64,000 nucleotides of DNA, taken from contig NW_018408896.1 in NCBI RefSeq assembly GCF_002113885.1, forward strand, positions 2,870,487-2,934,486, written 5' to 3'. Each line of letters starts with the position of its first letter. The first letter of the stretch is position 1. Under the pieces are notes generated by a model that saw nothing but the letters and a program-made list of their open reading frames with translations, had not been told where the DNA came from and made no database searches. The translations under genes and the position numbers were made by a program. The DNA comes from Mizuhopecten yessoensis. Lineage: Eukaryota. Below, piece after piece: positions 22,401 to 28,400 of this stretch.

Positions 22401-25400
22401 GATCTAATTCCGTGGAATTACTGAAAACATTAACTCGAAAGTAAAACATTTATTCTAAGATTGATGCCCTTGAATAAGTATAGTATGTGTTGAATAATTC
22501 ACGAGACTCACAATAATTATGTACATGCATGTCATCATACCATGAATAGGGAAGATCTGAGGTGAACGGTCCCTGCATGAAGGCTGCAATTGTTCTTTTG
22601 AATGTTTCTAGTAAGCATGTGTGTACATTGTACAGTAAGCTGTAAGGTTGCTGTAATGCAAGTTTAACACTTTTACAATTCTGATTGATGTTTTAGAATT
22701 CCTTGTAATTTATTTAATTGAGTTTTCTTCCTGCTTCAAGATTTCAAAATATAGTCAAGTTTAATGTCAAGTTTAAAAATCATCTTGTAGCTATTGGGAA
22801 CTTTTTGACATGAACTCTGTGAATACATCAAACTGGAAATAATCAATAGTATCACATATGCCAACACAAGTTGGTCCATGTATCTGTAACGCTAACAAAA
22901 CCTGCAACTATGTAGTCCAGGAAATCTTAAGATTTAAATTTGTTGTGTTATTAATATCAAGAGACAATTAATTACTATATTAAAGTCACGACACTGATCC
23001 TCGAAACATTCAAGTAAAATAATATTACGTTCCAGGTCACAACTACAATAAAACAAGCCAGGTATTTGAAAACAAGATTTAAGGGTGAAGTGTTTCATGG
23101 TTTATATTATATATGAACCAAGACACCTTTTCTTGTACAATGTATCTTGGTATTTACTCATTGTGAGGGCCACACCGGTACCAATGTCCCCATTATAGCT
23201 AGTGTAAACAGACCACATTTCTCTTTCAATAACATCAGAACCTTTGCCTTTCCCCACCTACCTGTATAAATGACAGGTGTGCCAGTCTACCTGGATTGTC
23301 ACACCGGCTATATATATATGGACACTCATGATCACTCCCTAATAATAGGTAACTCTATATGTCCAAACTATAGATAAGGTTCGTTTCAGTCAAATATTTC
23401 AATACCTTAATAAAAATTACATCTCATATTTTTTTTAAAAAGATTATGACTTTTAAATTGTCAATGCATCTTACATGTGTTTTCTTGTAAAGTAATATAT
23501 AAACAGGTCCATTAGAGTAGAGATTAGGGATGATACCCTATATTGACCACACTGGGTATTACGGTGTAAATTGTTACTCGACACCACTTCACAGCCTTAC
23601 TCCCTCCCCCACACTACTCCCAGGAAGATTACATTCCTCTGGCTTTCAAACCCTTTCAAATCCCTTGTAAAAGGCAGACAAATTATCTAGTGTGGGCTTC
23701 ACACAATGTACCCTTCCTTCCTGCAAACATGGCCAGTCACAGGAAGCTGGTAGTTTGAATCACTTTATTACACACCATTAGCCTGTAAGGCTGTGTGCCA
23801 GTCAAACATTTGGAAAATTCAAACAAAACCCACCAGTACTCTTTCAACTTTACTTAGCGTGATACAGTATATGTAAATACATTAGCAAGCCCGCTCCTAG
23901 GATAACCTACTTGAACTTTGAAGCCACTGAAGACCCTTCCCTTGATCAGTCAGTAAAAACCCACTTCTTCCATAATTAAGAGACAAATTTTCATATTGAG
24001 GTCAGACAGGTTTGAAGTTTGAAGCTATTGAATTCTATTGATTTGATAATTAATTTGAACAGTTGATGCATACTTCATGTTTCTTACACGGTTTGAACTT
24101 TCTCAATTGATGTCAGAGGTAAAACAGTAAATATTTTCATGTAGGACAAAATATTTAATTTAATATTTTCTATTCACTTATCTATTTCATCAATCATATT
24201 TTGATGGCACACTATTAACAAATTTGTAAACTGCTACAAAATCTAATATCTTAAGATTTCCCCTGAATTAAGTTGTGCTTTGGTGGAGATATTTTCTGAC
24301 AGCTGACTTCAGTTTAAAAAAAAAATTAAAAAAAAATTAACTTAATTTTCCTGAAGGGAAAGCCTTGTTTAATCTTGACAAAAAAATTGTCAGTTTAAAT
24401 TATTACACCTCTACTTTATTTACTCTATATAAAAGTAATCGGTTAAATCAAATATATCCCCACTTTTGCCTGAGTGTTTTTTAGTCCTGTGTGTTAGTCT
24501 GGGAACTAAAACACACCTACACTCGGGTGTTTCCGCCGAGCCAATCCGGCGAAAGGTGGGCGGAGCTTGTTACCGAACTCGGAAGCGACGCGCGAAGTGG
24601 GCGGAACTTGCTACCGAACTCGGAAGCATTTGGCTCCATTGCCATCAAAGGGGTAGTTGGGACGTGAAGCTATACAGCTTATGGTTTGCAAATATTTTCT
24701 AGTTAAAACTATCTCTCCAGTGTGTATCGGTATAATAAAACGGTTAAAGTATGGGGTTGAGGGATATACCAAGTTTCTGGTGTCCCTTGACCATGCCTAT
24801 TTCCCTCGGCTTCGCCTCGGGAAATAAACCTGGTCTCGGGACACCATAAACTTGCTATATCCCTCAACCCCATACTTTAACTGTATACTAAGGCATGTCC
24901 CTGAAACCAGTGTCTGTAGGTATAACAACGTGTACAGACCAATACTTAAAGTGTTTGTGACAGGATGCATAAACAGTACATGTCTATGCATAGGATCAAT
25001 GTTTCCAGTAAAATGTGTGAAAGCAGGAAAAGGTCAATCCTATAACCTATCATCACACTATACGATAGTCAGTCTGCATCTATCCTATACTGGTAGTCAT
25101 ATAACTCTATATACCGGACAAACTATCCCATAATCAGTCTACATCTATCCTATACTGGTAGTCACATAACTCTATATACCAGACAAGCTATCCCATAGTC
25201 AGTCTACATGTATCCTATACTGGTAGTCACATAACTCTATATACCGGACAAACTATCCCATAGTCAGTCTACATCTATCCTATACTGGTAGTCACATAAC
25301 TCTATATACCGGACAAACTATCCCATAGTCAGTCTACATCTATCCTATACTGGTAGTCACATAACTCTATATACCGGACAAACTATCCCATAGTCAGTCT

Positions 25401-28400
25401 ACATCTATCCTATACTGGTAGTCACATAACTCTATATACCGGACAAACTATCCCATAGTCAGTCTACATCTATCCTATACTGGTAGTCACATAACTCTAT
25501 ATACCGGACAAACTATCCCATAGTCAGTCTACATCTATCCTATACTGGTAGTCACATAACTCTATATACCGGACAAACTATCCCATAGTCAGTCTACATC
25601 TATCCTATAGTGATAGTCACATAACTCTATATACCGGACAAACTATCCCATAGTCAGTCTACATCTATCCTATACTGGTAGTCACATAACTCTATATACC
25701 GGACAAACTATCCCATAGTCAGTCTACATCTATCCTATACTGGTAGTCACATAACTCTATATACCGGACAAACTATCCCATAGTCAGTCTACATCTATCC
25801 TATACTGGTAGTCACATAACTCTATATACCGGACAAACTATCCCATAGTCAGTCTACATCTATCCTATACTGGTAGTCACATAACTCTATATACCGGACA
25901 AACTATCCCATAGTCAGTCTACATCTATCCTATACTGGTAGTCACATAACTCTATATACCGGACAAACTATCCCATAGTCAGTCTACATCTATCCTATAC
26001 TGGTAGTCACATAACTCTATATACCGGACAAACTATCCCATAGTCAGTCTGCATCTATCCTATACTGGTATTCATATAACTCTATATACCGGACAAACTA
26101 TCCCATAGTCAGTCTACATCTATCCTATACTGGTAGTCACATAACTCTATATACCGGACAAACTATCCCATAGTCAGTCTACATGTATCCTATACTGGTA
26201 GTCACATAACTCTTTATACAGGACAAACTATCCCATAGTCAGTCTACATCTATCCTATACTGGTAGTCACATAACTCTATATCCCAGACAAGCTATCCCA
26301 TAGTCAGTCTACATCTATCCTACAGGACAGACTATCCCATAATCAGTCTACATCTATCCTACAAGACAAACTATCCCATAATCAGTCTGCATCTATCCTA
26401 TACTGGTAGCCACATAACTCTTTATACCAGACAAACTATCCCATAGTCAGTCTACATGTATCCTATACTGGTAGTCACATAACTCTTTATACCGGACAAA
26501 CTATCCCATAGTCAGTCTACATCTATCCTACAGGACAAACTATCCCATAATCAGTCTACATCTATCCTATATTGGTAGTCACATAACTCTATATACAAGA
26601 ATATCCTTAAACAAACTCAAAAAGTACAACAATATCTGGGATCCTAAGCACAAAATTTGATGGTAGGAACTATTTCAGAGATCCTAATGCACACAATTTG
26701 ATGACAAAAGTGATTTTTGGAATCCAACAGCACAAAGGTTTGATGGTAGAATTGATTTCTGGGATCCTACAGCACAAAGGTTTGATGGTAGAATTGATTT
26801 CTGGGATCCTACAGCACAACGTTTGATGGCAGAAACTTTTACACGACTCTACACATCACTTCATCACTTTTTAAAAGAACTTAACAGAAGTCCAAATATT
26901 TATACTAGTAGTGTACATAAATTGTACTTGCATGCATATTCAGATGTGAATATGGACCCACATACTGTTATCATCTGTAATATTTGCCGTTGTATAACAT
27001 TTATATTATATAACCCACATCCAGATGGCATTCATATACATATATGATATGAATGCCATGACACCATTGTCGACGTCATTAATATGACGTTATAATTATG
27101 ATTGATACCTGGGCCCACTTGTATAAAACATCTCAACTCTTGAGATTTCCTCAAGTCTAAGATTTCCCAAAGACAATACATTGCTTGAGATTTTCCTTAA
27201 CTTTGAGATGTTTTATACAGGTGGGCACTGGCACTACCCCCTTGGACTGATGGCTGTTTTATTAATGGTACAAACATATAGGATACTAGTATACATTATT
27301 TGTTATTATATGCATGAACATTTCTCGCAATCACATTGGTCGGATCCTTTACACGTGACCAGTCCTCAAAAACTCATGTAGACTGGTTATCCGGTGAATA
27401 TCGATTTCTAAATATAGCCTGTATGGAAAATCCCCGAAACCTGTCGTAGCGCATGCTCAGTTAGACTGGAACGCGATCTGTCAGACGACATTAGAAGATG
27501 GCTGCTGGCGAACGTTTCTCCTCCGTTAGGAAAATTACCAAAACTATTCGAGGATAAAGATGTTGTTAACGTAAAAAAGGCCATTGAACACGCAGTGCAT
27601 GTCCTCCATGCTTATCTTAAGAAAAAGAATCTAGACGATACCTTCGAAAGCTACAATGATGAACTGTTGTATTCAAACCTGGCTAAATTTTACACGGAGG
27701 CTCGCGTACAAAAATCAGAACCTTTAGTTTTGTTTTGTTTTATTTAATTGCTGAAGCATATAATAAAACAGTTATGGGCTTTTGTGCTGGTAAATATGAT
27801 GTGATATGACCCTGAAAGATTGATATTGACTGAGGCGAAGCCGAGGTCAATATCACTCTTTCAGGTTCATATCACATCATATTCACCAGCACAAAAGTCC
27901 ATATTTGTATAAAGTTAAGCTGATCAGTGTAATAAAATTTCTTTTAAGACAGATTCCCAAAATGGTAAATTAAAGTAATGAACAGATTTCAGTTGGCAAT
28001 TCATAGGCAACATGAATGCCAACTAGACAAAAGACAAATCCAATATGAAGCATGCTAAGGATTTGCTTTTGTTCAGTTGGAATTCATATTGCCTATAAAA
28101 TGCCAACTGAAAGCAGTTAAATGCTTTATAAATACAAAATGTTCATTATTTTTTAGGCCTGATTTTCAGTCTGTATTTTTGTTTTGGGAATTGAAAGGGC
28201 AGTGCGTGTATTTGTAGCATACATATATCAAAAGGATTGAGGAAATTACCTGATGACTTTCTTTGGTTGAGGAATGTCTTTTTTCTTGAGGAATTTCTTC
28301 AGAAATGAAACTATGTCTTGTCCCACTTGTTCTTCCGTCAGAGATTCCATGTACAGGGCCTCTTTACCGCTTAACCAACCTGAAACAAAACAAGCATTCT

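Follow-up and report, generated by a model that had tools for sequence, protein, structure and literature searches.

Hairpin-ended elements in the genome of the scallop Mizuhopecten yessoensis as probable derivatives of Crypton-type transposons

Among the classes of eukaryotic DNA transposons, Cryptons are, to our knowledge, the one about which least is understood, with ends that are called featureless and a mechanism that has been inferred by analogy only. The named source for these DNA transposons is reportedly Goodwin 2003. Members of the CryptonA group carry a single tyrosine recombinase gene with DUF3504/QRICH1-type domains and no reverse transcriptase, leave no target-site duplication of the cut-and-paste type and have non-autonomous derivatives that far outnumber the coding copies (PMC3212892). 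No terminal repeats were found in animal Cryptons by Kojima and Jurka in 2011, even among 50 copies of one family (PMC3212892), and fungal Cryptons possess only 4-6-bp direct repeats. A stretch of 64,000 nucleotides from the scallop Mizuhopecten yessoensis (assembly GCF_002113885.1, contig NW_018408896.1, positions 2,870,487 to 2,934,486; hereafter the window) contains two short elements, A and B, that with their coding relatives share these general CryptonA features. In contrast to a group described as lacking terminal inverted or long repeats, 10-14-nt repeats and a 120-160-nt palindrome are present in all of the families described below and in four other assemblies; the repeats are inverted and the 3' hairpin is long, polar, mismatch-bearing and conserved across phyla. 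The reading favoured here, to which a probability of about 75% is assigned, is that A and B are short internal-deletion derivatives of Crypton-type transposons with a defined 3' hairpin end, and that the rare inverted ('flop') form of the hairpin loop is a local inversion.

All element and palindrome coordinates given without a locus prefix are positions in the window, and both elements, with all of their parts, are described on the + strand. Element A (24400-24887, ~488 bp) is non-autonomous and hairpin-ended, belongs to family A and carries the majority 'flip' loop, a term that denotes a loop reading CTCGGCTTCGCCTC on the strand that carries the element 5' to 3'. Its limits were drawn from the block conserved with six further copies (BLAST and MAFFT) and from motif coordinates; the flanking DNA varies among the aligned copies and no target-site duplication is seen. 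The 5' terminal inverted repeat, TTATTACACC (24400-24409), stands at the left edge of every aligned copy and agrees at 9-10 of 10 bases with the reverse complement of the 3' subterminal inverted repeat GGTATAATAA (24729-24738), which lies immediately before the palindrome. The palindrome itself (24740-24884) is composed of two 71-nt arms, 24740-24810 and 24814-24884, that are 86% complementary, and has at its tip the 14-nt loop CTCGGCTTCGCCTC (24805-24818). Apical CTCG sites at 24805-24808 and 24816-24819 enclose a GC-TTC-GC mini-stem, and an inner mismatch bubble places CTTG (24786-24789) opposite CTCG (24835-24838).

Element B (27303-27911, ~609 bp), likewise non-autonomous and hairpin-ended, belongs to family B and carries the rare flop loop. 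Contigs of paralogous copies diverge at 27303 and 27912 in three public DNA runs, which take the form of contigs dominated by paralogues at the B locus and are informative for element boundaries only; the same limits are backed by BLAST to other copies and by a head-to-tail B-B junction at locus L110. RNA reads on B are sparse and fall on both strands. The element begins with the 5' terminal inverted repeat TTATTATATGC (27303-27313), followed by a recombinase gene remnant (27498-27717) that keeps the promoter-proximal start, with an ATG and the first ~75 codons (one frameshift), and answers to the N-terminal QRICH1-type domain of Crypton proteins, and then by the 3' subterminal inverted repeat GCATATAATAA (27756-27766) and the 3' palindrome (27773-27903). 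As computed, the inverted-repeat arms span 27755-27830 and 27846-27921 (76 nt, 84% complementary). The loop, GAGGCGAAGCCGAG (27832-27845), is inverted relative to 21 of the 22 sampled family members, while the outer arm mismatches keep their normal polarity.

The preliminary description had proposed that the window holds two hairpin-ended elements sharing a 14-nt loop in opposite orientation, with arms unrelated to each other and a coding remnant in one copy, and in each of these respects it proved sound. The inverted-repeat coordinates place an imperfect palindrome of ~145 nt at the end of both elements and the two loops are exact reverse complements; the window has two occurrences of the 14-mer, where shuffled sequence predicts 0.01. 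The arms of A fail to align with those of B. The motif TATAATAAAAC(G/A)GTTA precedes both palindromes (24731-24746 in A, 27759-27774 in B) and TGTATA follows both. The coding remnant of B is real and recurs genome-wide, with no fewer than 753 candidate places.

In the genome searched, made up of 82,659 contigs that total 987.6 Mb, there are 515 exact matches to the 14-mer and 2 to a reversed control, and the loop is therefore taken as a family signature. A generic form, GAGGC-NNN-GCCGAG, is found 1696 times (control, 19), with GAA, TTT, TCT, TCC, TAT and others as its central triplet. When 102 loop copies were read with their flanks and sorted by arm sequence, 38 were placed in family A, 23 in family B, 23 in family C and 15 in family D, with a few copies of other arm types; families B, C and D join at relaxed clustering thresholds. 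Conservation of the loop between families of unrelated arms, as had been proposed, thus extends to four or more arm families. The conserved unit is longer than the hairpin, at 480-800 bp, and has the hairpin at one of its ends in every family, and families A to D share a common plan: a 5' terminal inverted repeat of 10-11 nt (TTATTACACC in A, TTATTATATGC in B, TTGTTACACC in C and TTATTATACC in D), the complement of that repeat at a distance of a few bases from the palindrome on its 5' side, the palindrome, and a short TGTATA or TATATA end. Family D also possesses internal 64-bp tandem repeats. A and B are ordinary members of large families.

The association of these families with Crypton-type genes is carried by three lineages. 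The 75-residue fragment encoded by B gave nothing significant in Pfam on its own, and an exhaustive protein search with it returned only weak matches to short proteins; it is through the domains of those matches that the relatives of the remnant are seen to possess, at the N terminus, the QRICH1 domain by which Crypton-derived proteins are typified. A connection to a full-length element is provided by locus L163, a two-exon recombinase gene with the motifs NHSLRAT and GHKSEQSLKTY, whose first exon is ~60% identical to the B remnant over 58 residues. The 5' leader and gene start of L163 are 71% identical to family B over 383 nt, and the two arms of the hairpin, together with the terminal CCATAATTG-ATA, match at 84-85%, with a degenerate loop in L163. 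Because leader, gene start and hairpin arms are held in common, B is read as an internal-deletion derivative of an L163-like element.

The second lineage, given the working name CryH-1, is a multicopy 2.4-kb recombinase element (L132-L134) with at least eight copies, of which the three that were read are 97.5-98% identical. Its intact open reading frame (ORF) of 645 residues matches DUF3504 at 4.8e-21, Phage_integrase weakly (1.8e-4) and the QRICH1 structure 9hjt, and no second long ORF is present within the 2.4-kb unit. The element begins with TTCTCCCAC and has GTGGGAGAA at its 3' side, a palindrome with 70-nt arms and the loop CTCGGCAAAGCCTCG, and then GATTCTATTAAT. In alignment, the putative catalytic Arg, Arg, His and Tyr residues are conserved in CryH-1 and its homologues and are lost in a vertebrate domesticated relative. 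CryH-1, with its DUF3504/integrase ORF, and L163 bear out the earlier expectation that full-length relatives would encode a Crypton-type tyrosine recombinase. In the third lineage, family C keeps the sequence MSLSRFAAVSE, which contains the N-terminal RFAxxSE motif of these proteins, just 3' of a CCAAT-type box; the match is short and the tie between family C and the recombinase proteins is suggestive only.

Two further candidates for coding partners were set aside, a long ORF at C217 being a run of N and a loop near a QRICH1-like ORF on C966 belonging to an unrelated family C copy in reverse orientation. Elsewhere in the genome, at least six QRICH1-domain-like ORFs of 325-373 residues lie on one strand within 150 kb (G000:C5138:2757038-2906126) and may represent a tandem family of Crypton-derived host genes. 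At L135 (1152-3222, minus strand), BTB/BACK-like ORFs adjoin a short QRICH1-domain ORF and are unrelated to the nearby hairpin element.

The same organisation is found in other animals. Protein homologues of CryH-1 carry DUF3504, QRICH1 and Phage_integrase domains, and at four of their loci the element end could be read: L154 (ENA assembly ERZ25073814; palindrome 5703-5864), L160 (ENA assembly ERZ26168041; 4249-4408) and L159 (the oyster Saccostrea cucullata; 4501-4622), each with the apex CTCGGCAAGCCTCG, and L158 (the hemichordate acorn worm Ptychodera flava; 4250-4370), with the apex CTCGCCTGCGGCTCG. At each, a palindrome of 120-160 nt lies 300-750 nt downstream of the gene, with one polarity relative to the gene in all four and with two 2x2 internal loops, as in the scallop. 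All four also possess a 10-14-nt repeat just before the palindrome, for example TGGTATGTGAGAAA or CAGTGGGAGAAA, whose complement lies 330-430 nt upstream of the gene. The 5' motif TTTCTC(A/C)CA is identical to that of the scallop element, and the 3' GATTCTATTAAT is identical in Ptychodera. No Rep gene was called at L154, L158, L159 or L160. For the homologues P0004 and P0008, the contigs stop short of the element ends.

Folding of eleven hairpins from five assemblies gives one design of apical and inner internal loops despite unrelated arms. At the apex, a GC stem of 2-3 bp closes a loop of 2-4 nt, with CTCG on both sides on the sense strand forming a 2x2 internal loop. A second internal loop (2x2 or 3x3) lies 15-28 bp down the stem, with CTCG in both arms or, in scallop families, CTTG/CTCT. 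At these sites the sense strand presents T.C/C.T mismatches and the opposite strand CGAG facing CGAG. A block of this kind, composed of a C:G pair, two sheared G:A pairs and a G:C pair, is a stable fold by nuclear magnetic resonance (PMC10085684). In the GAA families the CGAG block on the antisense strand encloses the GCGAAGC mini-hairpin, a motif reviewed in PMC13037366. The earlier emphasis on this heptamer does not hold, since it is not the conserved unit: sister families place GC-TTT-GC, GC-AA-GC or CC-TGC-GG between the same CTCG/CGAG flanks, so that the mini-hairpin varies while the mismatch sites are kept. What does stand is the broader proposal of a structure-conserved cis-element of a transposon family, loop and fold being shared while the arms differ. 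The strands would thus differ in the stability of their folds, and a single polarity is kept by the element, which lends indirect support to the idea of a cis-element used in a folded form. For the palindrome of A, the DNA fold comes to -57 kcal/mol on the + strand and -63 kcal/mol on the opposite strand; nearest-neighbour DNA folding omits sheared G.A pairs and the mini-hairpin bonus, and small energy differences between strands are evidence neither way. A strand-specific role of the folded form, as single-stranded DNA or as a cruciform, is plausible.

A palindrome at this position could instead be a signal for the 3' end of the gene, acting as a terminator or in polyadenylation, or could serve the transposon in replication or silencing, and not be a recombination site. 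The hairpin is always downstream of the gene on the sense strand, and AATAAA lies just before it in families A, B and D. Against this, AATAAA is absent from family C and from the CryH-1 clade, and non-coding derivatives present in hundreds of copies keep the hairpin at their exact 3' terminus, which would be expected if it were a signal acting in cis for transposition. In junctions, the subterminal repeats also pair around the hairpin. A gene-end or silencing function is, on this evidence, distinctly improbable.

Most of the architecture so far described is also that of the HINEs. Published HINE/DINE-1 elements possess subterminal repeats, a 3' palindrome and central tandem repeats, enter T-rich targets without duplication and occur in arrays (PMC4067079; PMC7492417), and the bivalve Cg_HINE and pearl elements resemble the present families in their subterminal inverted repeats, 3' stem-loop, optional central tandem repeats, T-rich sites, lack of duplication and tandem copies. 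A and B might accordingly be HINEs, that is, non-autonomous Helentrons moved by rolling-circle Rep/helicase proteins, in which case the recombinase gene would be captured cargo and the palindrome a terminator. The 64-bp internal repeats of family D and the head-to-tail copies are traits of the HINE type, and the genome contains 56 matches to Helitron_like_N (PF14214). Unlike that of HINEs, however, the coding partner here is a tyrosine recombinase and not a Rep/helicase/endonuclease, and a recombinase gene or its start occupies the same position and orientation in three divergent lineages (B/L163, C and CryH-1). The unit of gene, hairpin and repeat is kept in four other assemblies with no Rep gene called nearby. 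Neither the loop nor its generic form is present in any of the 31 Rep loci fetched (105 kb in total, with ~1.5 kb on each side of the Rep domain), and the sole Rep-adjacent loop, at a distance of 2 kb from a Rep fragment, belongs to the end of an oppositely oriented recombinase element. Published HINE palindromes measure 5-10 bp (PMC4067079), against 60-75 bp here, making the present palindrome about ten times longer, and it carries a conserved loop. In the oyster HINE study, elements were classified by structure only and no autonomous Helentron could be tied to them. A HINE identity for A and B is judged unlikely.

Several points nevertheless weigh against derivation from Crypton-type transposons. 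Subterminal repeats, a 3' palindrome, the tandem repeats of family D, the lack of duplication, T-rich targets and arrays are features common to both kinds of element, and the ~1.5 kb read on each side of the Rep domain is a narrow scope. None of the coding copies read is both intact and autonomous and provided with the exact GAA loop. The box-II histidine is replaced by threonine (NTSVRK) in the mollusc/hemichordate clade of CryH-1, while coral homologues keep NHSxRK. Family B is without the inner mismatch site. No hairpin occurs within the DNA read at L136 (scallop), L153 (Pecten maximus) and L155-157 (Porites); not every Crypton-like gene has this design, and those free of a hairpin may be domesticated or decayed. 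Finally, action of the recombinase on the hairpin is something that we infer from sequence.

The opposite loops of A and B had suggested regular flip/flop isomerism, as at parvovirus and adeno-associated virus (AAV) termini, where a terminal palindrome likewise has an asymmetric tip in two orientations. Were the ends replicated by such hairpin priming, the two forms would be its regular isomers. Both orientations are indeed present in every family, and two 98%-identical CryH-1 copies differ by an inverted loop and inner arms. The ratio is nonetheless far from ~1:1. In the sample, family A has 34 flip and 0 flop copies, family B 21 and 1, family C 19 and 2, and family D 12 and 3, giving 86 flip to 6 flop among 92 classifiable copies (binomial p = 3e-19 against 1:1). 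An exact pattern anchored on the subterminal repeat common to A, B and D gives 285 flip to 16 flop genome-wide (~5% flop), the B copy of the window being one of the 16. The breakpoints of the flops vary, the inner mismatch bubble being inverted along with the loop in 7 of the 16 and the loop alone in 6; the remaining 3 are family B copies with no inner bubble to score. In the window B copy the outer arm mismatches GGGC/GTCC and GGTAAATATG/CATATTCACC keep the normal polarity, and in some flip copies the bubble alone is swapped.

Parvovirus and AAV hairpins differ further from the present ones, which occur singly at one end of an element whose enzyme is not of the HUH Rep type. With variable breakpoints and a ratio of ~19:1, the flops are therefore read as sporadic inversions between arms and not as hairpin-primed flip/flop; the pattern fits occasional intra-palindrome recombination or template switching, and parvovirus-like end replication is very improbable indeed. 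The idea of regular isomerism is thus abandoned, ~95% of copies having one orientation. The census by arm family that the preliminary description had proposed gives strong polarity of the loop, with rare flops of differing breakpoints. The opposite loop of window B is read, from its sequence, as a local secondary inversion inside the palindrome, brought about by recombination or template switching between arms. The A/B loop contrast is that between a normal family A copy and an exceptional family B copy, and the inverted loop is useful mainly as a natural mutant. Other irregular ends were observed among copies of the 2.4-kb element: two right arms in tandem, a flip-type and a flop-type one, at L132 (reverse complement, ~6380-6640); a partial second hairpin at L134 (reverse complement, ~6400-6680); and, at L140, a hybrid apex in which the central GC-NNN-GC alone is inverted.

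Insertion sites and junctions were read at two loci. A family C copy in L011 is inserted precisely into a 30-bp satellite, without target duplication; the element lies within the array (L011 870-1109 and 1571-3014), which forms a natural filled site of known periodicity. In the B-B tandem junction of L110, ..TTGTATA is joined directly to TTATTATATGC.. with zero spacer. Taken together, these two cases are the basis for placing insertion at T^AT in AT-rich DNA. Head-to-tail junctions exist and do not prove circles. Arrays of entire hairpin-ended elements in this arrangement were also observed at C690 1504863-1506110 (loop spacing 617 and 617 bp), C706 227551-228732 (497 and 671 bp) and C1185 1048056-1048679 (610 bp).

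Tyrosine recombinases usually require a pair of inverted binding arms flanking a short spacer, and a mechanism can be proposed on which the ends described here would supply them. The end structure of this Crypton lineage comprises the 10-14-nt 5' terminal repeat, the complement of this repeat a little upstream of the 3' end and the 120-160-nt imperfect palindrome, with a short TATA(N)T-like terminus at the hairpin base. Insertion is precise, into AT-rich DNA (T^AT) and without target duplication. The recombinase would recognise the palindrome in an extruded or single-stranded form. In a circle or head-to-tail junction, the hairpin would combine with the 3' subterminal and 5' terminal repeats into one larger palindrome, as in the B-B junction, with the joint at the boundary between an internal loop and an outer stem of 10-11 bp; the crossover point might thus coincide with the junction. 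Extrusion or single-strand folding would bring the two subterminal repeats into a paired-arm geometry, and the CTCG/CGAG sites could position further subunits or pick the strand.

Integron integrases, and XerCD on CTX phage, use folded substrates. The likeness of their attC and attP sites to the present hairpins would lie in an imperfect palindrome, structure kept over arm sequence, strand-specific unpaired polarity and a tyrosine recombinase as the enzyme. They differ in that there is no sequence relation, the host here is eukaryotic, and tandem mismatch (CGAG-block) sites take the place of extrahelical bases. It is conceivable, though on balance doubtful, that, in this lineage of animal Cryptons, a folded and strand-specific hairpin, made up of antisense CGAG blocks and a GC-clamped mini-hairpin, serves as a recombination signal. 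If so, the hairpin would be a eukaryotic counterpart of the integron attC or CTX attP substrates, and part of the abundant bivalve HINE-like and pearl-like repeats, for which no autonomous partner is known to have been found, would be mobilised by Crypton recombinases and not by Helentrons.

As far as could be checked, by comparison with published papers rather than with Repbase or Dfam, the design of these families is an undescribed variant of Crypton organisation. No Crypton paper with a hairpin, palindrome, stem-loop or cruciform was among the best 15 of 14,559 full-text matches in the literature, and a 2026 paper on fungal CryptonA elements makes no mention of hairpins or palindromes. A polar structured 3' end with subterminal repeats, found from bivalves to a hemichordate, provides concrete cis-elements and, as candidate substrates for tests of the recombinase, the GA strand in folded form, the CT strand and the duplex. 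The enzyme that mobilises an element cannot be told from Helentron-like architecture alone, a point that bears on the classing of bivalve satellite-carrying repeats.

The DNA between A and B in the window is occupied by unrelated repeats. In a tandem array at 24924-26600, a 65-bp unit recurs ~25 times, with most copies 95-97% alike; the array begins 37 bp past the 3' end of A, outside the element, and is followed by 42-bp repeats at 26656-26834. A short palindromic repeat at 27108-27231, with 29-nt arms and a 66-nt spacer, is of extreme copy number: in each of three DNA runs the contig depth sums to more than 1e5, RNA reads number ~100 per bin and fall on both strands, and it looks like a miniature inverted-repeat transposable element of very high abundance. 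Just 3' of B, at 27971-28128, lies a long inverted repeat with 63-nt arms that are 83% complementary and a 32-nt spacer, without the conserved loop.

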